Below the pieces are notes generated by a model. It was given only the letters and a program-made list of their open reading frames with translations. It was not told where the DNA came from and did no database searches. This document shows, piece after piece, positions 1 through 56,809 of a stretch of DNA of 64,000 nt; positions within the stretch are counted from its first letter, which is position 1, and each line of letters begins with the position of its first letter. The translations under genes and the position numbers were made by a program. The stretch comes from Trichosphaerium sp. ATCC 40318. Taxonomy: Eukaryota > Protista > Tubulinea. Location of the stretch: positions 1 to 64,000 of the forward strand of contig JALMLS010000130.1 in NCBI GenBank assembly GCA_038496445.1, written 5' to 3'.

Positions 1-413
1 TGTGTATATGAGAAATGTGCATACATATTTTTACCAAAAAAAAAAAACCCAATTACAAACTCAAAATCGCTTGCATCTATATAACTCATCACTATGGATA
101 CCTACAAATCAATATTGCTTGTACCATGTTTATATGGCTTAATAACATATATGTACATACATAAAGTAATTAAAAATACATTTGTAAATGCAGCCTCCAA
201 ACGCAACTGCATGGTAAAAATATTTCAAAATTTGCAAAAAAAAAAAGTTCGCGCGTCGCTCACGGGCCATGTAGTGCACGAATATCATTTTCGATGCTGC
301 ACACCATAATAATATATGCCTGCCTAGCGGCACAGCCATGAAAGTAGCAAAATCTAATAAAATCAAAAAAGTAGAGGTTTAGGTAACCTTAACCCTAACT
401 AACAAAAATACAA

Positions 414-1080
414 ACACAGGTTTTTCGTGTTAAAAATATGACCGCGAGCTTGCGGTCGGAAACGAACACATTAAATACGTGTTACGTACACAACAGCAAG
501 CGTGCAATCAGTTATAAAGCAAGACCTTCAAAAAAAAAAACGGTTTTTAAAAAAGTACACACTTTTTATGTGTACAAAAACCGACCGCAAGCTCGAAGTC
601 AGGTACAAACACAATAAACATGTGTTGTATACTGTATACCAAGCGTGCAGTCAGTTATAAAGCAAGACTTTCAAAAAAAACGGTTTTTAAAAAAGTACAC
701 ACTTTTATGTGTACGAAAACCGACCGCAAGCTCGCAGTCATGTACGAACACATAAAAAGCGTGTTAAAAATCATACTGCAAGCTCGTGGTCTGTAAAAAA
801 AGCAAAACAACAAAAAAATATTTTAAAAAAAGTACACAATTTAATTGTGTACCAAAACCAACCGCCAACTAACGCGACTTTTGTACACGCGATATACATG
901 TTCTAATGTCGCAGTGAGCTCGTTGTTGTAAATTGAAGCAAAATAAAACAGTGTGAACCAAAACCAAACGAAAAAACAACGCACACGCGTTCTGCGTGTT
1001 ACGAAACCCCGTTTGAGTTTGGTTCTACCATGAAAAAAAACCGTATGGTAACGGAAAAATCGTACACATGAAAACCGTGT
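414..1080. repeat. Degenerate ~140-bp tandem array of ACAC-N9-GTGT dyads flanking a GACCGC-N6-GCGGTC quasi-palindrome
   Basis: Near-identical blocks caagcgtgca..cagttataaagcaagac..aaaacggtttttaaaaaagtacacac at ~498 and ~640. Unit starts at 414, 557, 697, 834 and probably 983. Eight exact ACAC-N9-GTGT dyads plus one with N8. Confidence 0.9.
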
Positions 1081-1166
1081 ACAAAAACTGTCATTTTTTT
1101 TTGAAAAATTTACTTGAAAAATTAACAAATTTAGGGTTTTAAAAAAACCATTTAAAAGCAAAAAAC

Positions 1167-1211
1167 CCCCTTTATTAGTCTTTAAAAATTAAAATAAGAC
1201 TAATAAAGGGG
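1167..1211. other. Perfect 16-bp inverted repeat (hairpin, 13-nt loop)
   Basis: cccctttattagtctt (1167-1182) is the reverse complement of aagactaataaagggg (1196-1211). Confidence 0.9.
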
Positions 1212-1213
1212 TT

Positions 1214-1357
1214 TTAAAAAAAAAAGAGTAAAAAAAAGAGGTTAGTACCTAGTTTTTTCTTCTTTCTGAGCTTAAGCTTGCCATCAGCTTCTTTGGAAGG
1301 CTCATCCTCATCAGAAAACTCAATGTTTATGAGAGAGAGGTCTTCATCTGAGCTCAT
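1214..1357 (-). CDS. Short acidic-then-basic orphan ORF or stranded first exon (MSSDEDLSLINIEFSDEDEPSKEADGKLKLRKKKKL...)
   Basis: Protein-like composition, NLS-like RKKKK, possible donor G|GTACTA. No downstream exons found. Confidence 0.3.
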   Translation of the reverse strand: MSSDEDLSLINIEFSDEDEPSKEADGKLKLRKKKKLGTNLFFLLFFF

Positions 1358-1673
1358 CCTTGATTTATGAAAAGTTAAAAAAGTAAAATGAGGCTTTTTT
1401 TCCCCCAATAATCGTGTTGAGAAATAGACAGAAAAATTTCGTGTTTCGAAATGTGAATTGGAAATTTCACTTGTTTAAAAAAAGTAAGAAAAAAATGAGA
1501 ATTTGACAGTTTGCAAGATTGTTGATGAGGTTCTGGGTTGTAAAAAACCCTATCTTGCTGTAACCCTACAGGGAGATTGTATGTGCAAAAAACATAAAAA
1601 AAAGCCAAAAAAATCGAAAAAATTTTACAACAGGGTAGAGTAGTGTACAAAAAAATACGGTTGGTACATACTC

Positions 1674-1870
1674 CTAAACCCTAACCCTAAACCCTAATTG
1701 GCTTCTAGGGTATAACCCTAATTGCTATTATTGTTGACTAGGGTTAGGGTTGAATGTTAAACTCCCAATTAGGCTAGGGTTAGGTTTACAACCCTATGGC
1801 AGATTAGGGTTAGGTTATTAAATGTTAGGATTAAGCTTTTTACAACCCTAATTACTATTAGGGTTAGGGC
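1674..1870. repeat. Interstitial telomere-like cluster, CCCTAA and TTAGGG in both orientations
   Basis: ctaaaccctaaccctaaaccctaa, tagggttagggtt and similar runs, arranged as ACCCTA-N(8/9/18)-TAGGGT dyads. Confidence 0.8.
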
Positions 1871-2900: not shown

Positions 2901-3471
2901 ATGTCGTCGAAACACAGTATCCTTTTTTTCTGCGCTTTAAAGGTTTTTTTTGTTCCAATGTTACAATAACAACCAGTTATTACGCCTTCACATTAATAGA
3001 CCCCGATTTAATCATGTGTGGTAAGATCTCAGGCATTGCTATTGCGCGGTACGCGTTTTGAACAGAAAACACTTTCACGCTCGTTTTACATACCCCCTAC
3101 TCCCTACTGACGTTACTATATAGCGTAGGAGACAAATACGACGGACAATGTGTTGGTTGGCAATGCGATAGCTTTGTAAACCCCCACACCATTGCCAGAG
3201 TGTGCGATGAATGCAATTACGGCGCCAACGAAGGAAGGTACGTTGTCGTTTAAATTTCAAAACAACATGTGCCAAAAAGAATTATTATAAGTACTAACGC
3301 GAGCGCAGGTGTATCATCACTGGCGAGCCGGGTGTGTCGGATGCTTACTTCTGCTCTGAATGCGTCAAATTAGAAAAGGACCGCGATGGGTGCCCTAAGA
3401 TCATCAACATTGGTTCCTCAAAAAAAGATATGTTCTACGAGAGGAAAAAGTATGGCTTTCAGCGCCGTTAA
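2901..3471 (+). CDS. PHF5A: PHF5A/Rds3 (SF3b splicing factor subunit), divergent, 4 exons
   Basis: Spliced product [113 protein letters not shown]. Confidence 0.95.
2917..2999 (+). other. Probable U12-type (minor spliceosome) GT-AG intron
   Basis: 5' site GTATCCTTT, branch-like GCCTTCAC about 10 nt from the AG, no pyrimidine tract. Removing it restores KHNPDLI. Confidence 0.75.
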
Positions 3472-3592
3472 GAGGTATCCAATAAAAAAAAGCACAAAAA
3501 ATATGAACAATAAAGCTGGTACACTTGTAAATTTAACTGTGTTTGTTTTACTAATTACAGAAAAAAAGAGTGTCAACGCTTTGTTTACGGTA

Positions 3593-4867
3593 CTATAATA
3601 TCTGTATTTTAGCACCCCTGTGATAAGGTGACACTGCAAATCTATATGAACTGTCTGAAAGTGACACGCTTTTGGATGTATGACCGTTATTGACAGAAAA
3701 TGCTACAGTTCGCATGTCCATGTCGAGTATGACTGAAACTACATCACCTACACATGCATTTTAGTAACTGTGGCGACTAAAACCTTTGCATACCCTTGGA
3801 GAATGATGGTAATCCACTAGCGCCATGTCCATCATTTGAATACAGCAAAGCGCTTGTACCATTTACAGCAGCTCCAGTTTTATAAACGCCACTACCAGGG
3901 AACGATCTAGCGTTACCACTATTGGTAGGAACTACACCAAACATGACATTTCTACTGCTATCGCATTGTAGTATCCTTTACAGAAAAAACAAACATGAGA
4001 TAGGTGGCCACTAAATATTTTCACGCACTTGAACTTGGCCACATGTTTGCCCGCTGAAATAGAACCCTGAATAAAAGCACAATCCCAACCTACACGCAAA
4101 AATTACATGTGTCATAAAATATGGATGATACAAAAAAAAGCCTTACCATTGCCATTATCCCTCCTCAACAAAGTGTTGTTATTGTGTAATGTAAAACAGC
4201 GTGATGGGTTACAATCGAAGCACATTGAAGAAGCACTAGGCACCTGGTCCGTTGGAGCGCATTTACTGTTACTTAACACAAGCTTGGTTAGCATTTCCAC
4301 CTTTTGGGTCAATTCTGTGACACGGCCTTCCAGTATTCCAACCTATACTTGGTATCAACAACCACGCACAGAGACATGTCAATACATACTGCTCGCTTAA
4401 GTATTTCAGTTTCACCTTTTTGAGCAAGCTTAGGTAGTTTTAGCGTGTAAGTGTTTGCTATGTTGAATCTATCGACTTCTGTAACCACGAGCTCAACAGA
4501 TTCTTCTGACTTTTCTACACGCAAGGAACAACCGAAATTCTAAGTTGAAAGTTAACCCTACCCTTCATCAAACACCCGAGCTTCACAGAAAAGAAGAAAA
4601 GCCAAAACAAATCTTAATACATACCTCTGCAATAGCATCCTTTAGAAGGAGTAGCACTTGAGACACTTTGTGGCATCTGTCGTTTGTAACAGCCTTCCCA
4701 GCTTTGTCGCCAACCAAATCGAGTAAATATAATTCCATCAATGATTTAGCTTCAATGCGCAGAGTGTTATCACTTTCATGAAACGTTAGCGTGAATGTAA
4801 CAGAATCCTTTGTAAAATTAACTTCTGTATCCAGCAAGGATGCTCCTGGCGTTCCTGTACAGTTCAT
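3593..4867 (-). CDS. SPRY/B30.2 domain protein (multi-exon)
   Basis: C-terminal exons SAGKHVAKF..NVMFGVVP..GDVVSVILDMDMRTVAFSVN..YRFAVS, typical of SPRY domains. Confidence 0.75.
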
Positions 4868-13734: not shown

Positions 13735-16700
13735 TTAATTGTTTATTGATACTTTTGGACTTGGACCAGATACATTTACAGGCAAGGCTTTGCCTAGGAG
13801 GTTTTTCCCATTTAGGAATATATTCACCTCGTATTTGCCTGGATATAACGCCAGGTACTCTATTTTGTAATATCCAGCAGACTCACGGAATACTGAGTGC
13901 TTAACTGGAGACACACCAGTAATGTCAAACTAAACAAAAACATAAGAACACACAACCCTGATTCTAACAAAAAGATAAAAAAACTCGTACTGCCAAGAAG
14001 TTAGCCTCGACATCCAATGGTTCTCCGTTTTCTCTTAATAGTGTAACAAAGAAAAAGTTGGTGCTATCAGTCTTTCCGACTTTAAGTGCTCTACCTTTAA
14101 GCTTGCATTTTGCCTTTGGAAAGCTTGGTGCTAATAAAGAGTACAAAATAAGTTTCACAAAAGAACAAAGGGACAAGTATTCAGACGTACGTGGATGTGG
14201 TGCAGCAATGACTTCAACGACTTGCCTGTATACTTCCTTACGGAACAATCTAACAACAAGGGTGTATTGTCCAGGTGTAGTAGGTTTGCAGCCTGCTTTG
14301 TACTTACCTAAGTAATCAGTTAAACAGTTTGTCTAATGAATTGTATGGGTAACATACCAATACCATGTTGGATGATTCTAGGTTGTAGCTTATCTGTTGA
14401 ACTCTCCATGGTGATATCAAAACCAATGGTACCAACATGTACAGGTTCTCCTGTTTGTGTTTTTGCGCCAATGTTGATGTTGAATGGATGGTTGCTGTAT
14501 GCTTTGCGAATACGATCTACAGCCAGTTTTTTTACTGGTTGAGCTTTTGAAAACTGTTAGCAAAACAAAGAGTCTTGTAAAGAACAAAAACTGCCTACCT
14601 GTTGTCACAAATACAGAGAAAGAACCACCTTCAATAACTGTATCACTGAGGGTAACTTTGAAGTCGTAATGTCCTAATCAAGGGAGTCAACATAGCGTAC
14701 ATTGAGTAGCAGTTGTTTATGCTTTTGGAGATAGTTGTTGTTGCTTACCTGGTTGTTGAGGCAAGAAGCTAACGATGTATGTGCCATCGCTGTTATCTTT
14801 TATACGTGGCTTCAATAAACCAGGTCCTGAGCCTTCAACAATGAAGTCATCTCCACCAGTTGATAACTATTGTTTTCTTTGTAAATACAATAACTAAATC
14901 GAATACGGGCGTACTTGAACTCCAGCATCGCTTTTTGCGATGATTGTGAATGAGCAGGATGTTGACACTTTACCACGAACAATGTTGGATACTTGACATT
15001 TTGCAGGAGATGCCTTTGCATTTGCTTGTTGGGCTGCTTTGTCAGCAGCTTCCTTGGCTTCTCTGTCAGCTTGTTCCTTAGCTTCTCTATCAGCTTGCTC
15101 TTTGGCTTCTTTGTCAGCTTGTTCTTTAGCTTCTCTATCAGCTTGCTCTTTAGCTTCTCTGTCGGCTTGCTCTTTGGCCTCTCTATCAGCTTTTTCTTTT
15201 GCCTCACGCTCTGCTTGTTCTCTGGCTTCTTTATCAGCTTGCTCTTTGGCTTCTCTGTCAGCTTGTTCCTTAGCTTCTCTATCAGCTTGCTCTTTGGCTT
15301 CTCTGTCGGCTTGTTCCTTGGCTTCCTTATCAGCTTGCTCTTGGGCTTCTTTGTCAGCAGCTTCTTTGGCTTCTTTGTCAGCTTGTTCCTTGGCTTCTTT
15401 GTCAGCTTGTTCCTTGGCTTCCCGTTCAGCTTGTTCTTGGGCTTCTTTGTCAGCTTGTTCTTTGGCTTCTCTATCAGCTTTCTCTTTCGCTTCACGCTCA
15501 GCGGCTTCGTTAGCTTCTCTTTCAGCATTATCCTTCTCCTCTTGTTCCAATCTTTCTTTATCAGCAGCTTCCTTCTCAAGACGGTCTGCTTCAGCTTTTT
15601 CAGCTGCAAGTTTGTTTGCATTTTCAGCAACATCCATTGTCATTGTGTGAATGACATCTCCGTACAAAGAAATACTAAAACACATATTAACAAAGTAATG
15701 TACTAATAGCAGAAGTAATCTTACGTTACTTCAAGAGAACCTGTCTCTGCAGGTGTTACATCAACATTAACAGAGGTAGACCGTTTTGTAATACTCTTTT
15801 CAGCTTGTGCGCTGAACGTAATATCAAAGTCTTCTTCCTTGAACTCTGCAGAAAGACCACTACAAACGATGTTAGGTATTGCATGTAACTGCCTTTTTCA
15901 AGGGTATATACCTGCTGTCCTTTATGCGTATTGAAAGTGTTGTGCTTTCACCAACCATAACATCTCTGTCACCGCCTGTAACAGTAACACTGAGAGTACT
16001 AGGATCTAAGAAATGTCAAAAAAATAAAGAAATCTTGAGACTTAGTTTTTCCTGGCGTACCATATTTACAAGGTACAGTAAATGGACTGCCTTTGATGGC
16101 TTTGCGTTGGCACTTAATTTCAAGGTCGCATGGTCCTGGACTACGTGGATTAAGGACCACAGTGTAGGTACCGTCATCTAAAAAGAAATCAGCCAATAGC
16201 ACGTCATCACTATTGCTATGCGTACTGTTGTCTGTGACATTGGCACGTCCGCATCCGGAGACTCTAATTGAGTCTCCTCCTTTCGTTTTCGCTTCACCAG
16301 ATTTATCCCTTTAGATACAAAGTTAGAGTGCTATTATTTTTCTTTTTTTTTGTTATTGTAGAAGGTATACCTGGCAGTAACGACTAGTGTACAATCTTGC
16401 CCAACCAGTAAGACATCTGGTATCTCAGCAGTACATTCAGCAGGTTCAGTAGCTAAAATAAAGCATTAATGTCCTGCAGTAATAAGAATTGTATATCTTA
16501 CGTGGTGCAAAAGTGGCGCTTTTTGATGTTGATACTCCTTTGATAGTAACTTCAAAGGAATGTTCACCGCCTTCTTCTGGGGTAAAAGTAACAGATATAG
16601 CACCTCTTGTAGTACGGAAGCTAAATAATAGTCAGTTTGCTGACAAGGAAAGGTGCAAGAGCGTACGTGTTTTGTACATCTTTTCCTCCGCATTTGACAG

Positions 16701-19481
16701 CAACAGATACGTCTTCATCAGACATGCTGTAGCGGTCTCCATTATCTGAAACTCGTACCTTGAAAGAAGCGCGTTCACTGGGAAACATTAGCACGCACAA
16801 TAGTATATAGACTATTGAAACTTACCCAACATCACCACCTTCAAGTGCTTCACCTTCCCATTCGAAGCTGAGTTCTGGTGCCTCTGGCTCTGGCTCAGGT
16901 TCAGGTTCAGGTTCAGGCTCTGCTTTAACTGGTTCAGGCTCTGGTTCGGGTTCAGGTTCAGGCTCTGCTTTAACTGGTTCAGGCTCAGGTTCAGGTTCAG
17001 GTTCAGGCTCTTGTTTTGGCTCTTCCTTTGCTTCTAAATGCCATGTTAGGATAAGTTATGCAGTGATATTACTGTACCTCCTGCTACAGTGAGTGAATAA
17101 GGACACCCTTCAAGGAGTTGCCCAGATATTGTGATATCAACGGTATGTTTGCCAGGCTCAGCAGTCTCCCACTCAACGTCAAATGTACCATCTTCATTAT
17201 CAAACGCCTGAGCAACAGTACGACCTCCTGGAGCCATAACCTAAATATATGTTGGAGTGTGAACGATAGCATGTAAAAGGAAACGAACCTTTACATCAAT
17301 ATCAGATTCGCTGACATTAAAAATCTCGCCGTCATCATCTGTTTGCTAATCTCAGCTTTTAACGTATATAAAATTCGTACCTTTAGGTTCAATGGTGAAT
17401 ACCATAGGTATACCAGAACCACTTGCATCACTAATACCAGACCCAATAACTTCTGTCTTTGAAAGAGATAATTTCTTTGCAGCAGGTTCAGGTTGTTTTT
17501 CTTTTTCTTCAAATAAAATCGATTAAATTTCGCGAAGGAGAAGTATAAACAAGGTATGTAGGGTACCTCCAATAAAAACTTTCCATGGGCTACCAGGAAT
17601 AGGACCATCTTTTACAGATACATCAATAGTATACTCTCCATCTTGGGAAGGCGTATACTCTACATCAAACATGCCAGGCTCATCATCATTTTCGAATACA
17701 AGAACATCCGCATGTGGTGTTACAGTGACAGTAATAGCTTCTTTTGTGGCTGCTACTTGCTCGTTCTTACTGTTTCGCAAATAAATTGTAAAGAATGCAA
17801 CTTCATCTTTCTTAAGAGACTCACTACATCACAATTAGAAATAAGGCTACTCACTAACTTTTTTGCAAAGTAGTTACCTCGATACGCCACAACCTTCAGC
17901 GCCACACTTGCTTCTATCAATCACAACCTTTTCTTGGCGTGGAGAACTCACTGGTTCAGGTTCTACAGCTATATTCTTCTTCTTACCACCGCTTACTTTA
18001 AGAGCGAAAGGTGAGTTTTTAATTGGTTGACCCTGAACAAAGACTTCGATTTTATATGTGCCAGGTGCTCCTGTTTTGTACTCAACATCGAATGAACCTA
18101 AAAAAAGCAATCAGATAATACCATTTAAACACCAAAAATGGGATTTACCGTCGTCATTGTCAAAGCACTCATTCTCCATTTCATTGCCTTCTGTATCAAT
18201 AATAGTAACTTTGATATGTTCCTAATTTTTTTCGAAAGAGTTAGTGACTTTTTGTGTATGTAATTGTGTTTGTGATAATGTCTATCGTACAGCTGTGATT
18301 GCACCTTTAGCGTAAACAGTAAAGTATGCAGTGTCATTGGCTTTAGCTTTTTCTGTGCCTGGACCTTCTGCATAGACGTTTGGATTTGGCTCTGTCGAGA
18401 TTGAAGAGGTCGCTTTAGAAGCAGGTGCTGCGTTTGGATCGGTTTTTTCAATTGTGAATGGCGAACCCTGCAACAACGAGTTAGTGCCTGTGAGTTATTG
18501 CGAAACTGCTAATTTACCTTGATAGGTGTTGTGCCAACAATAACAGATACTACATATTCTCCAGGAGTAGCGAGAGTGTACTCAATGTCGAAGGACTTAT
18601 CTTCGTTATCGAACACTTCAGCAACAGGAGTTTCAGGCCCTGTAATACTGACCTAATACGCCACGTTTAACAAATAAGGCCACGGGAGTATGCTACTAGT
18701 AGTAACACGTACTTTGAAATCGTCGGCGCTAACTGGAGATAAAGCAGTTTCACAGTAAACTGTCAACACTTGTGGTGCATCTGTGATAGGTCCACTTTCT
18801 ATTCCGTTACCCTCGACTGTAAATACTTCTTGACTACTCGGTTCGTCACCAGCTATTAAAACATTTATAAGCTTATTAGAGAGAACAGGAAACATTGGTT
18901 TTGGCTCAAACTCGGCGTTCAGATTTTCGGCTAAAATGCATTTTTAACATGTACTCACCGTCTTCTTCAGAACCTAATCTAAGCATCCATGGGCTTCCTT
19001 TTACAGGCCTTCTTTTGATCTTTACGCTAAGCGTGTAATTGTTTTTCTCTTTTAGTTCGTATTCGACATCAAAGGTACCGTCAGCGTTATCGAATACCTC
19101 TGCTTGTATATTTCCTTCAAAGCGTTAACCAAAAAAGAGAAAAACTTTTTGTTATCTAATTCAAACCTGGATTAATGGTCACTGAGACATCTTCATCCGT
19201 TATGCCGTCTCCTGCGTACAGCGTAAAGTAGGAAATTTCTCCTGTTGAAACGAGTGTCAGGTTAAAGATCCTTTTGCCCATTTTGGATAACTGTCGAAAC
19301 AATAACGACACTGTTATAAAACGTACCGACTTTTACTTCGGAACCCAGACCTGGACCTTCACAATACTAGCGTAATGTTAATAAAGAAACTGCGTAACGG
19401 GGCGTGAAAGAGCTAAGCCAAGCATAGAGAGATGTTTGTAGTTGTACATCTCCCGTTTTCGTTGTGTTAATAACGTACCAT
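13735..19481 (-). CDS. Large filamin/ABP280 Ig-repeat protein with EP-rich and charged helical spacers, no CH domain seen
   Basis: Many repeats of type [22 protein letters not shown]...G.PI.GSPF. The ATG is followed directly by an intron and a filamin repeat. Confidence 0.85.
15040..15520 (-). repeat. Coding 24-bp tandem repeat encoding (EAKEQAD[KR])n, about 19-20 copies
   Basis: Seen directly in ORF 14894..15685. Confidence 0.95.
16880..17012 (-). repeat. Coding Glu-Pro repeat ([13 protein letters not shown])
   Basis: (ggttca/ggctct)n on the + strand. Confidence 0.9.
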
Positions 19482-31143: not shown

Positions 31144-31750
31144 TCAAACGTCATATAATTCTATGCTCACAAGTGTGCCATCAGCGTAATTGCCCTCTGC
31201 TGTCAATCGACCAGTACGCGACCAACATTTATAATCACCTTCCCTCTTGCCTTTTACTAAGTAGTACCGGCAGTACAATTGTCCACTAGGATGCCAGTGT
31301 TTGTACTCTCCTTCAAGTTCATCATTTCTGTACTGACATTGTTGCTGCAATTGACCACTCTGAAACCATGCCATGTACTCTCCTTCTCTTTTGTCGTTAA
31401 TGTAATTAATCTTCTGAAGCAATTTTCCATTTGAGTAATACTCTTTGTACATTCCATGACGTTTTCCATGTATCCAGTAACATTCACTTGACACAGTGTT
31501 ATTCTTCGAATATTTAACCCACTTTCTATGTTTTTCAAGTTCATCATTAAATCTAGTTGTCTTTGCAGTGTGATTTGATAACAACGGCCACTTTATGTAT
31601 GATTCTCTATCTATCTCCATAATTACAAGCTGTAACTCAATTGGTAGGTTTAACAGGTCGCATACATCAGGTTTCGAAGTATTTATCTACTTTTGATTAA
31701 ACAGACGCCAAATAACTTGTAACAGGCACCTTGCGTTTGTTTATGCTCAT
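31144..31750 (-). CDS. F-box-like + MORN-variant (YwqK-type) repeat protein, one 43-nt intron
   Basis: MSINKRK|INTSKPDVCDLLNLPIELQLVIMEID..WPLLS, then G..K.YY.NG.L....Y.N.K.EG repeats. Intron 31687-31729. Confidence 0.85.
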
Positions 31751-34834: not shown

Positions 34835-36091
34835 CTAGCTTTCCAGTATTTTGACTCCATGAAAGTATTTAACCTTCTCTTTTATTTGTCCTAAATCATT
34901 CCACTTTATGCTCTCCCCTTCACATAAACCGTTAGTATAATAACACTTAATCTCCAATTGTCCATTCGCATGCCAACTCTTGTACTCTCCTTCTTTTTTT
35001 CCTTTAATGTAGTAGCATTGGTCCAATAAAGTACCATTTTCATACCACCTCTTGCTCTCTCCAACAGCAATATCATCTACAAACCAATAATGTGCTGACA
35101 GATGTCCATTCTTATGCCATTGCTTGCACTCTGCATTTAATTTACCACTGGTAAGGTGACAATGCTCTTCAAGTACACCATTATCGTACCAGCATTTTCT
35201 TTCTCCTTCCCACTTATTATTGACATAGTATTCATGTAAGTGCAATTGACCGTTCTTGTGCCATGACTTGCTCTCCCCATCTTTAATGCCATTAATATGA
35301 AAACATAATTCTCCATCATTGTTGAATCTTGCAGCACTATTAATCTTTGAGTAAACTGTACATTCTTCTTGCTCTCCATTTTCATACCACTTCCTTTCTA
35401 ATACTCTACATTCTTCGCCACCTATACTTTGTGTCCCATCACTAACAGGAGATAAAAGTTGATGCAATTGACCATTCTCATGCCAAACTTTTCTTTCTCC
35501 TGTTCTTACACCATTAACAAAAACAGTTCGAGATCGTAGTTGTCCACTTCTATACCAAGATTTTTCAATACCATTTTTCTTCTTATTTTTAAAGGTACAA
35601 GAAATCTCCTTTACTCCATTATCATAAAACCTATGCTCTTCATTTTCTTTGCCATTAATGCAATGACTCATTGCTTGTAATTTCCCAGTTTTATCAGAAA
35701 ACAGCTTCCACATTCCATGTTTTCTTCCTTTTTTGTAATCTATTGATTCCTTCAAAAGACCATTCAAACGCCACAATTTCAAGTCTCCATCAAGTTTGTT
35801 ATTAACATAATAACATTCTTTTATAAGTGTACCTCCTCTACGCCATGTACTAAGTCTTCCTTCCTTAAGGCCGTTTACATAGAATCTTTGACCTACTTTT
35901 CGATTTTTATTAAACCTCATCCATTTCCCTTGTTTTTTCAATTTGTTGTTAAACCTTGAACAATATGCAGCTTGTTTTGATAAAAGAGGCCATAAGAGAT
36001 AAATATTAACGTCTAAATCCATCATTTCGAGCTGTATTTCAGGTGGAAGCTGCAAGACACTTATACAAGCTTGTTTTTGTGTATGTGACAT
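34835..36091 (-). CDS. Intronless F-box-like + MORN-variant repeat protein (418 aa)
   Basis: VLQLPPEIQLEMMDLD..WPLLS, then more than 10 GE.K.W..NG.L repeats. Confidence 0.9.
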   Translation of the reverse strand: MSHTQKQACISVLQLPPEIQLEMMDLDVNIYLLWPLLSKQAAYCSRFNNKLKKQGKWMRFNKNRKVGQRFYVNGLKEGRLSTWRRGGTLIKECYYVNNKLDGDLKLWRLNGLLKESIDYKKGRKHGMWKLFSDKTGKLQAMSHCINGKENEEHRFYDNGVKEISCTFKNKKKNGIEKSWYRSGQLRSRTVFVNGVRTGERKVWHENGQLHQLLSPVSDGTQSIGGEECRVLERKWYENGEQEECTVYSKINSAARFNNDGELCFHINGIKDGESKSWHKNGQLHLHEYYVNNKWEGERKCWYDNGVLEEHCHLTSGKLNAECKQWHKNGHLSAHYWFVDDIAVGESKRWYENGTLLDQCYYIKGKKEGEYKSWHANGQLEIKCYYTNGLCEGESIKWNDLGQIKEKVKYFHGVKILES

Positions 36092-54492: not shown

Positions 54493-55300
54493 GTGCTAAA
54501 AACTGAATAAGGAAAAATGTAAAAAAAAAGTATAAATATTCACACTTTTTTTTGTACTTCTCGTGACACTTGTCGTTTTATTTTTTTGTTACAACTTTTT
54601 CTTAGTGAGTTTACTAAAATCAATAAATTGAAAAAGAAATTTTTATTTAATTTCGTTTGGTGAAGGGAATTATAGGCAAACTCCAAAAAAACATCAGTAA
54701 TAAAATCATCGATTGTTTTTTATTTTTACTGTCGTGTTATAATGCTATACGTTACATGTTACGTTACAAATATTTGGTAAAACTAACTTTCCCTTCAATC
54801 AAAGAAAAGAAATGCAGGAGGAATAATAAAAAAACTGTGTGTGACGATTTGCTGACGTTTTATTTTTACTTGTTTTTTTCTCAGTTTTTTCGGGGTTTTT
54901 TTGGTAGTTTTTTTCTCGTTCCGTAAATACTAACAATATCCTAGAACTTATCTATACTACGCTTCACTAGTGCGGCTCATGACACTTTACGTAAAAAGAC
55001 GACTCCCAAGTTTTTGAGACGTTAAAATTTTCTCGGATGTAACTTATGACGAAAAAGGCAAAAACGTAAAAAAACTAGCCTCAAGTTTAATAACTTTTAT
55101 CAAATGTAACTGGTGAGTACGCACCGTATTATATTACGTGTCCTAAAGGTGTTTATATTCCAATTAGCTCCCGAGGTGATGTCATTGAGAGTTCTTATTT
55201 CTCCGTCTACGTTGAATTTGACAGTCAAATTCTGTGGTCGTACACAAATGTCCTAAGCGCCAAATGCCTAAGCAACGCGTATATCGTTATATAAATATAC

Positions 55301-55972
55301 ATGGAAGATAATGATGGCAACTATAGGAAGATACAAGACGAAAAGATAAAAAAACTCGAGGCGTTTGAAGACGCTAAAGAAGAGATGTATGATTGCTTGG
55401 AAAGGTTGAAGGATATGTATAGTCAGTGTTTCCGAGGTTCAAACGAATCAGTAAGAAGTGATGGGGCTATATTTACGCTGAGAGAATATGAGAGTTTACA
55501 TAAAATATTAAGAGTTAAAGAGAACTCAGATAATGAAAAGAGACAGTCTGAAGCAAAGGCAGTAGCTGAAGGCAAGAAACCTAATAATGACTTCTATATT
55601 GTACATCCTTCAGTTAGTGTAAAAGAAGCAAAGGAACCAACTGACGAAGACTTTTTTGTTCTTCCTCCAAAAAACACTGAAAAAAATGTCATAGAAGACA
55701 AAAATGATGGGTCGTCTTTGACAACAGGTGTTCAACTTTGTAGCGACGGAAATAATGATCTTCCAATTTCTGTACATACAATGATAGCACCTGTAATGAG
55801 TACATGGTCTTCTGAAGGGATGGAAGTACAAGAAGGAGTAGATTCAATGCAGATGTTTTTCTCGTCTACCATGGAATCTAATTTGATAAATACTGGCGTA
55901 CGAATGGATAGTGTTGTGGAGACCTTTATACAAAGTGAAGATGATGAAAGTCATGAGTGTAGTAGAGAATAA
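55301..55972 (+). CDS. Intronless acidic orphan protein (223 aa)
   Basis: Long purine-rich ORF with TATATAAATA just upstream of the ATG and an N-terminal coiled-coil-like segment. Confidence 0.7.
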   Translation: MEDNDGNYRKIQDEKIKKLEAFEDAKEEMYDCLERLKDMYSQCFRGSNESVRSDGAIFTLREYESLHKILRVKENSDNEKRQSEAKAVAEGKKPNNDFYIVHPSVSVKEAKEPTDEDFFVLPPKNTEKNVIEDKNDGSSLTTGVQLCSDGNNDLPISVHTMIAPVMSTWSSEGMEVQEGVDSMQMFFSSTMESNLINTGVRMDSVVETFIQSEDDESHECSRE

Positions 55973-56809
55973 AGCGATAATTTTAGAATCGTTTTTGGTA
56001 AAATAATCAAAAACCCAAACAAAAGACACTGCCGTGTCATTGACATGGACCAAAAAAAATCACGTCAACTTCCTTTTTAGTAATAGTGTTTTTTTTCTTT
56101 TTTTTTTGAGAAAAGGAGAGCGTTGAAGATAGTGTGGCGTTGTTTTACATAGGGAAAAGTCCACGTTCGTATGTTTATACGCGTTTTTATAGTGTTGCTA
56201 TTCTGTTTGCTGAAGAAAGCGTACTCGGGTGTTTTGATAATGCGAAAAGTACCAGGTCAGCACAGGGCTCTTTGTTTGTGGTTTGCTATAATTAGTATTA
56301 AAAAAAATGAACATCACAAAATAAAACTACGTTCAAGATGCAGAAAACTGAAAAAATTTAACTTTGAACAGAAGAAAAATTATGTATGTTCAAACTTTGA
56401 CGTCATATATAATGTTCGAGAACGTGCAACAGAATATTTTTTCAAGAATTATAATTATAAATTGTGTGCACGTGATACACGAGACTTTCTGTTCAGAAGC
56501 GTGTTTTACTTCAATGAACGAACGAATATTGTTTCTGTGGGATCGGTATAGTACGATCTCTCCGCGACTGGTATACTATTGGCACTTGGACCTCCCAAGT
56601 TGCTTAATTACCTTAAAAAGAAGTTCAAAAAAAGACTATAAATACCACAGGTTATTTGTACAAGATACCACGACTTTCCATTGATTAGGCTGAAACACTT
56701 GTACCAAATAAGCTGTATAGTAATTTTCTGGCATGCTTACAATCAGACACAGAGATTGCTCTAGGATAAGATATGCAATGTATAGGCTGATTTTGTGAAA
56801 AAATAAATT

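Follow-up and report, generated by a model that had tools for sequence, protein, structure and literature searches.

The ACAC-N9-GTGT dyads clustered near the beginning of the window (by which we mean the whole 64-kb stretch of DNA that was analysed) were shown by alignment to be homologous copies of one module and not independent sites. The constraint on the eight letters of their core looks real, and at the level of sequence it is fitted better by a folded hairpin than by a row of duplex sites, since bases next to the core covary and the dyads lie within or beside longer conserved pairings. Most plausibly, the array that they form is a short, local, satellite-like repeat that originated from a small mobile element or a hairpin RNA. 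Our preferred reading, held tentatively and with less than even confidence, is that the two-hairpin unit is constrained and may act or be propagated in its folded form, the ACAC/GTGT stem being the candidate point of recognition.

Dyads as copies of one alternating module

The first-pass annotation had listed eight exact ACAC-N9-GTGT sites, an N8 copy at 697 and a one-mismatch copy at 885, and all of them are present. The exact copies start at 414, 466, 557, 609, 748, 834, 983 and 1064, so that 414-1080 holds eight compared to two in the remaining 63 kb of the window (42786 and 48468), which have no flanks in common with the array and are unrelated to it. Shuffles of the window contained on average 1.35 such dyads and at most 4. 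When spacings from k=0 to k=24 were counted, k=9 gave 8 matches within 380-1150 and every other k gave 0 or 1, while 0 to 3 matches were found at each k in the rest of the window. The pairing of dyads 51-52 bp apart, the period of 137-149 bp and the palindrome lying between the two dyads of a pair (at 440-457, with further copies) were likewise found as the annotation had described them. The dyad pattern is thus confirmed, and we regard it as a real, non-random and locally constrained feature.

Direct-repeat families D1-D5 and the unit alignment stretch the array to about 400-1090 (~690 bp), and Tandem Repeats Finder (TRF) reported a period of 139 across 496-865. The units, listed in the table together with the predicted hairpins, are 60-90% identical, with a mean column identity of 59% in the unit alignment (alignment A1); identity is highest at the centre of the array, where units 2 and 3 reach ~90%, and lower toward the edges.

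All ten dyads align as one module of ~40 nt once every second one is reverse-complemented. Read from one end, the module has a short flank followed by ACAC, then a loop whose centre is T-rich and conserved, then GTGT; an A-rich stretch and, after it, a block of the ACCGC type complete it. Its orientation alternates between A(+) and B(-) with two alternating linkers. The spacers, taken in the first-pass annotation as free and widely differing, appear so because half of them were read on the wrong strand; after correction of the orientation the loops align and have the T-rich centre in common. The module at 1064 combines A-type flanks with an inverted loop (D5, I10). A decayed eleventh module, with two mismatches in its left half, lies at ~936-956, and an identity of 89% links its right flank (952-970) to that of module A4 (846-864). 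In unit 5, a newly made inverted duplication joins 955-970 and 1010-1025. As all modules derive from one ancestral module, the N9 spacing was inherited and is not independent evidence; no other spacing is enriched in the window.

Table. Positions of the array, its units and predicted hairpins, and of adjacent features (strand left empty where none applies)
Feature	Positions	Strand	Remarks
Whole tandem array	400-1090		~five units of 137-149 bp, decaying rightwards
Unit 1	400-542		modules A1 (414) and B1 (466)
Unit 2	543-682		modules A2 (557) and B2 (609); TRF, unit alignment
Unit 3	683-820		modules A3 (697, N8 copy) and B3 (748); TRF, unit alignment
Unit 4	821-928		modules A4 (834) and B4 (885, one CpG-type mismatch)
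Unit 5	929-1045		decayed A5 (~936-956) and B5 (983), which tips a new long hairpin
Terminal half-unit	1046-1090		module A6 (1064), loop inverted relative to the other A modules
Short hairpin A1	413-431	-	5-bp stem
Short hairpin A2	555-575	-	7-8 bp stem, followed by T6 on the minus strand
Short hairpin A3	695-714	-	followed by T6 on the minus strand
Short hairpin A4	832-852	-	9-10 bp stem, followed by T7 on the minus strand
Short hairpin A6	1062-1082	-	followed by a T-rich tail on the minus strand
Long hairpin 1	439-510	-	tip B1 (466-482); RNA fold -35.9 kcal/mol, z -3.9; alifold
Long hairpin 2	579-656	-	tip B2 (609-625); -43.5 kcal/mol, z -6.0
Long hairpin 3	719-794	-	tip B3 (748-764); -41.8 kcal/mol, z -6.0
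Long hairpin 4	859-928	-	tip B4 (885-901); z -3.6; arms altered yet pairing
Long hairpin 5	955-1025	-	tip B5 (983-999); z -4.2; arms unlike those of units 1-4
Separate hairpin	1163-1215		20-bp stem, 95% complementary (I9); sequence unrelated to the array
Telomere-type heptamer cluster (AACCCTA/TAGGGTT)	1546-1865		both orientations, often as short dyads
Small ORF	1214-1357	-	47 aa, acidic and lysine-rich; upstream of the array on the minus strand; donor-like GT near 1250

A neutral, decaying tandem repeat could account for much of this anatomy. Under that account a small palindromic sequence, possibly left over from a miniature inverted-repeat element, would have multiplied by unequal exchange, with template switching at replication making and repairing its hairpins, so that neither the conservation nor the apparently compensatory changes would call for a function. 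We regard it as a serious rival, if a somewhat unlikely one. The drop in identity from the central units to the edges is typical of homogenisation by unequal exchange, one module (~938) has decayed, and the mismatches at 885 and in the arms of the central palindrome are CpG-type transitions. Arrays that are homogenised centrally and decay at their edges are usual. Furthermore, the loop inversion at 1064 and the new inverted duplication in unit 5 are signatures of template switching, a process by which hairpins can arise and be repaired at replication in the absence of selection (PMC8794818), and palindromic arrays of up to five repeats are known from miniature elements (PMC3879986) and as Helentron-borne arrays (PMC7492417). 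Against this account, however, no terminal inverted repeats with a target-site duplication were found, the best inverted pair (385-410/1726-1751) being 81% complementary with no duplication at its flanks, and the 64-kb window holds no second copy of the array, even when searched using a covariance model of the unit with filters off (best E 0.16). Were the array neutral, it would be an amplified palindromic module whose loop inversions and new inverted duplications mimic protein sites, and a caution for motif-based scans.

Conservation of the core and folding of the units

In the ten-module alignment, for which the modules were found through the motif and the aligner anchors on conserved blocks, departures from the consensus occupy 1 of 80 core cells, compared to 33 of 90 in the loops and 94 of 240 in the flanks; coming from one locus with about five related units, these counts are not independent events. 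The single core departure is the CpG-type transition at 885, and inclusion of the decayed eleventh module raises the count to 3 of 88. When each module's departures were scattered at random, no two blocks of four columns, taken 5-13 columns apart, came out equally clean in any of 50,000 randomisations. Even in the most decayed units, where the flanks are 40-50% diverged, the core is kept. The first-pass annotation had named poor conservation of the half-sites relative to the rest of the unit as a result that would speak against it; the half-sites were found to be far better conserved, and the proposal was not refuted on this point. Template switching, invoked by the neutral account, restores complementarity without accounting for the same eight letters in ten modules. 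The invariance of the core letters exceeds what pairing needs, which suggests that the stem may be recognised in a sequence-specific manner.

Each unit is predicted to fold as two elements, a long imperfect hairpin of 70-78 nt and a short free-standing hairpin. The first dyad of each pair forms the short hairpin and the second one the tip of the long hairpin, while the inter-dyad palindrome of the first-pass annotation represents one arm of the latter. Unit 5 retains this plan of a dyad-tipped long hairpin (inverted repeat I20, 16 nt, 88%) in spite of different arm sequences. Minus-strand RNA folds reached -35 to -43.5 kcal/mol in the four full units and -48.1 kcal/mol in the 145-nt segment 948-1092, all of them far better than shuffles (z -3.6 to -6.0).

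In the named structure 93.8% of the cells are paired. Changes on both sides of a pair were found in 7 of 28 pairs, counted on the same four sequences from which the structure was derived; column shuffles gave 2.8 +/- 1.3 (1 of 500 reaching the observed value) and slid partners gave 0 to 2. The double changes in helix 1 come mostly from unit 4. The stems around the dyads comprise 5-10 bp, extending beyond the core outward in 8 of the 10 modules and inward in 6. Immediately outside the core, four modules have a T-A pair and another four an A-T pair; only U4B and U5A, which are among the most diverged modules, are unpaired there.

These pairings bear on the view, favoured in the first-pass annotation, that the dyads are duplex sites for a dimeric sequence-specific protein contacting the outer four bases of the 17-bp dyad, with the array serving as an origin, insulator, centromere-like or boundary element. 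To judge from the motif, a dimeric duplex-binding protein is a possible reader of the dyads, and we consider it an unlikely explanation of the array. Such a dimer would likewise leave the core invariant and the spacing constant. The core keeps its letters and not only its complementarity, N9 is kept in 8 of the 10 modules, the G+C content of the array region is among the lowest within the window, operator-like dyads of the same form occur in unrelated phage contigs, and a 17-bp dyad is of ordinary size and geometry for helix-turn-helix dimers. However, spacing and spacers alike go back to a single ancestral module, the outer flanking pair shows a symmetric covariation that independent contacts with each half-site would not call for, and the long-range pairing around every second dyad is kept with changed sequence. 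Moreover, the motif is unused elsewhere in 63 kb (2 copies versus ~1.3 expected), no initiator, integrase or polymerase gene lies nearby, and five units at one locus are far from a centromeric satellite. The earlier proposal of a cis-element under selection, as opposed to a neutral satellite, is therefore supported in part: the constraint on the core (0/50,000) looks real, but the covarying pairing fits a hairpin better than duplex sites.

Folding was strand-dependent. Plus-strand folds were weaker in every unit (z -2.0 to -5.8), the consensus fold amounted to -26.5 kcal/mol on the minus strand versus -17.9 on the plus strand, and G-U pairs occupied 14 cells of the minus-strand fold versus ~3 of the plus-strand fold. 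The AT skew is +0.25 to +0.31 over the array, and both the fold advantage of the minus strand and its G-U excess could stem from an A-rich plus strand via mutation bias alone. In a scan for hairpins followed by a T-run, using a bacterial-type consensus although the host is an intron-bearing eukaryote, 12 sites were detected in 1-2400 compared to 1.7 expected, 11 of these 12 on the minus strand, and the remaining ~60 kb were at chance level.

Such sites could mark a zone where minus-strand transcription ends, or else small genes of the RNA polymerase III type arranged in a row, in which each unit gives or stops an RNA of ~120 nt with a terminal hairpin and a U-run. The 11 minus-strand sites exceed the 1.7 expected for both strands, the T-runs are ~120 nt apart, and just upstream on the same strand lies the strong hairpin at 1215-1163 (z -5.1 as DNA and -4.7 as RNA), which is again followed by a T-run on the minus strand. 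We nevertheless judge this explanation very unlikely: the consensus scanned is of the bacterial type and the host is a eukaryote with introns, promoter elements of polymerase III, whether internal or upstream, were not recognised by eye, units diverged to 60-90% identity are too different for a working multigene family, Rfam gave no match, and such sites are not enriched at other gene ends of the window. The upstream ORF at 1214-1357 (-) does not help either. It had no Pfam match, no word-search candidate, no entry in the protein collection and no match among 1.84 billion representatives, and its status as a gene is not supported. A weak test for a transcript of the region came out negative as well, ten ORF-sized products (1-1408; 3386-3598) being absent from a protein collection that does contain the transcript from 54929-55988.

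To return to the two-hairpin unit, the alignments show that one short hairpin module, with ACAC and GTGT on either side of a T-rich loop of ~9 nt, was copied in alternating orientation and then amplified as a tandem unit of ~140 bp to about five units. The unit may act or propagate as a folded single strand, either as hairpins of a minus-strand transcript or as hairpins extruded from DNA, with the minus strand as the better candidate for the active strand. The ACAC/GTGT stem would be the point read by a factor that senses both structure and sequence. If so, the invariant stem would constitute a compact, testable signal that combines structure and sequence, in a marine protist that has been little studied, and would help to show how short satellite-like arrays originate from hairpin modules. 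A further step, which goes well beyond the alignment and which we think doubtful, is that the array is the eukaryotic counterpart of hairpin-recognised repeats and that a dedicated hairpin-binding protein reads the invariant apical stem. Such a protein might be an RNA-processing factor acting on the minus-strand transcript or a single-strand DNA-binding enzyme, and the array would then function as a small-RNA locus, or as an element of the BIME type, in a marine protist.

Comparison with known repeat and hairpin systems

Searches for relatives covered RNA families, viral contigs, metagenomes and prokaryote genomes. Rfam gave no usable match at gathering or permissive thresholds, the best being a plant MIR family with 32 bits versus a cut-off of 140. 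A pattern of two dyads retrieved only coding repeats and phage operator-like dyads from the viral contigs, in which two longer unit-specific patterns had no match. The pattern dyad-ACCGC-dyad found only a CA-rich 50-bp satellite in metagenomes and two single chance matches in prokaryote genomes.

The operator-like dyads lie on related phage contigs (L001 49-117, L009 7658-7726 and L012 7654-7722), each with two near-identical ACAC-N9-GTGT dyads. These are 51 bp apart, equal to the spacing in the array, and within each pair they have the same 9-nt spacer bar one base and different outer flanks. They look like operator pairs and are unrelated to the array in sequence, so that the likeness appears to be one of chance.

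A histone-type 3' stem-loop, H/ACA or C/D snoRNAs, nonamer loops of rolling-circle origins and Helitron termini were all rejected on inspection, as the boxes or termini that define them are lacking. Spacer repeats of rDNA were dismissed since the window contains no rRNA.

Among described repeats, DTC84/pearl-type elements of bivalves and Helentron-borne arrays consist of up to five core repeats of ~140-170 bp with a palindrome, situated in gene-rich DNA (PMC3879986, PMC7492417). The array resembles both in its few palindromic repeats of similar length and its gene-rich setting. However, neither a flanking cassette nor inverted repeats at the termini, a target-site duplication or ends of the Helitron type could be demonstrated for it, inspection of the unit borders having revealed no Helitron-type termini. 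It also comes from a protist instead of a mollusc and has no sequence likeness to these arrays.

REP/BIME elements are regularly spaced imperfect palindromes in alternating orientation, arranged in intergenic tandems with a conserved stem tetranucleotide, and REP elements are recognised as a folded single strand (PMC2817692, PMC3479197). The array has the regularly spaced palindromes in tandem, their alternating orientation and a conserved tetranucleotide in the stem, a likeness in form only. REP/BIME elements are found in bacteria, number in the hundreds and are linked to a RAYT transposase gene, whereas the array is a single one in the window, belongs to a eukaryotic genome, and no RAYT gene was found.

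Tandem imperfect hairpins of 70-80 nt with strongly negative z on one strand are also reminiscent of microRNA-type clusters, from which the array differs by the lack of an Rfam match above threshold and by a second short hairpin and T-runs in each unit. With iterons and papillomavirus E2-type sites it shares fixed half-sites, fixed spacing and adjoining A+T-rich DNA, but it has no initiator gene and no replicon context, its spacers are homologous, and pairing beyond the half-sites covaries. For several of these systems the array lacks a defining feature. We think that it is best filed as a further case among the short hairpin-bearing tandem repeats.

Chromosomal setting and neighbouring genes

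The first-pass annotation had gone on to suggest a centromere or subtelomere element, a replication origin or the end of a large integrated element, and had pointed to inverted telomere-type motifs bracketing the array. The motifs at 391 and 1131/1132 are present. However, telomere-type heptamers number 19 in the window versus 6.7 expected, 15 of them in 391-1865 and 13 in 1546-1865, and those flanking the array (391-397 and 1132-1138) are outliers of this 15-heptamer cluster and not specific to the array. The cluster is a separate feature, with the array on one side of it and the 3' end of a Kazal-like gene on the other. No telomere tract adjoins the array, the longest heptamer run comprising ~3.5 units (1673-1697), and the first 390 bases of the window are not telomeric. 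About five diverged units in one place, with ordinary genes as neighbours and no telomere tract, do not support a centromere or subtelomere element. As to a replication origin or the end of an integrated element, Pfam scanning of ~40 ORFs in the window detected no integrase, polymerase, Rep or initiator protein and only cellular families; neither proposal found support.

The window represents nuclear DNA of an intron-bearing eukaryote with few long ORFs and two tRNA genes. Multi-exon neighbours were searched exon by exon, and exon-sized Pfam matches identified PHF5, Kazal, C45-type peptidase, Ras, condensin subunit 2, metallophosphoesterase and MORN_2 repeats. The last exon of the PHF5-like gene (~2950-3471, +) scored 75 bits to PF03660. 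In its upstream exon-like stretches, several positions at which we presume cysteines to be expected (not aligned) carry other residues, and the gene may represent a paralogue that has diverged or a copy in decay.

Two ORFs with MORN_2 (YwqK-like) repeats, 34835-36091 (-) and 31144-31620 (-), have relatives of at most 44% identity, and the few of these with an organism name are bacterial. They may reflect an old gene transfer or a lineage-specific expansion.

Exact look-ups of the ORF products of the window returned a single match, P0121. The 223-aa product of ORF 55301-55972 (+) is identical to this protein, which is held under JGI and MMETSP labels, and had no relatives in 5.8 billion clusters. 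Its polyadenylated and unspliced transcript of 1,069 nt (L020; JGI sample containing Ga0186627_106946) corresponds to 54929-55988 of the window with 100% identity and no gap, which indicates that the DNA comes from a marine microbial eukaryote kept in culture. Further tandem repeats were observed at 15032-15526 (24/48 bp) and 16884-17011 (45 bp). The former underlies long ORFs on both strands (14812-15706), and this region may encode a low-complexity repeat protein.
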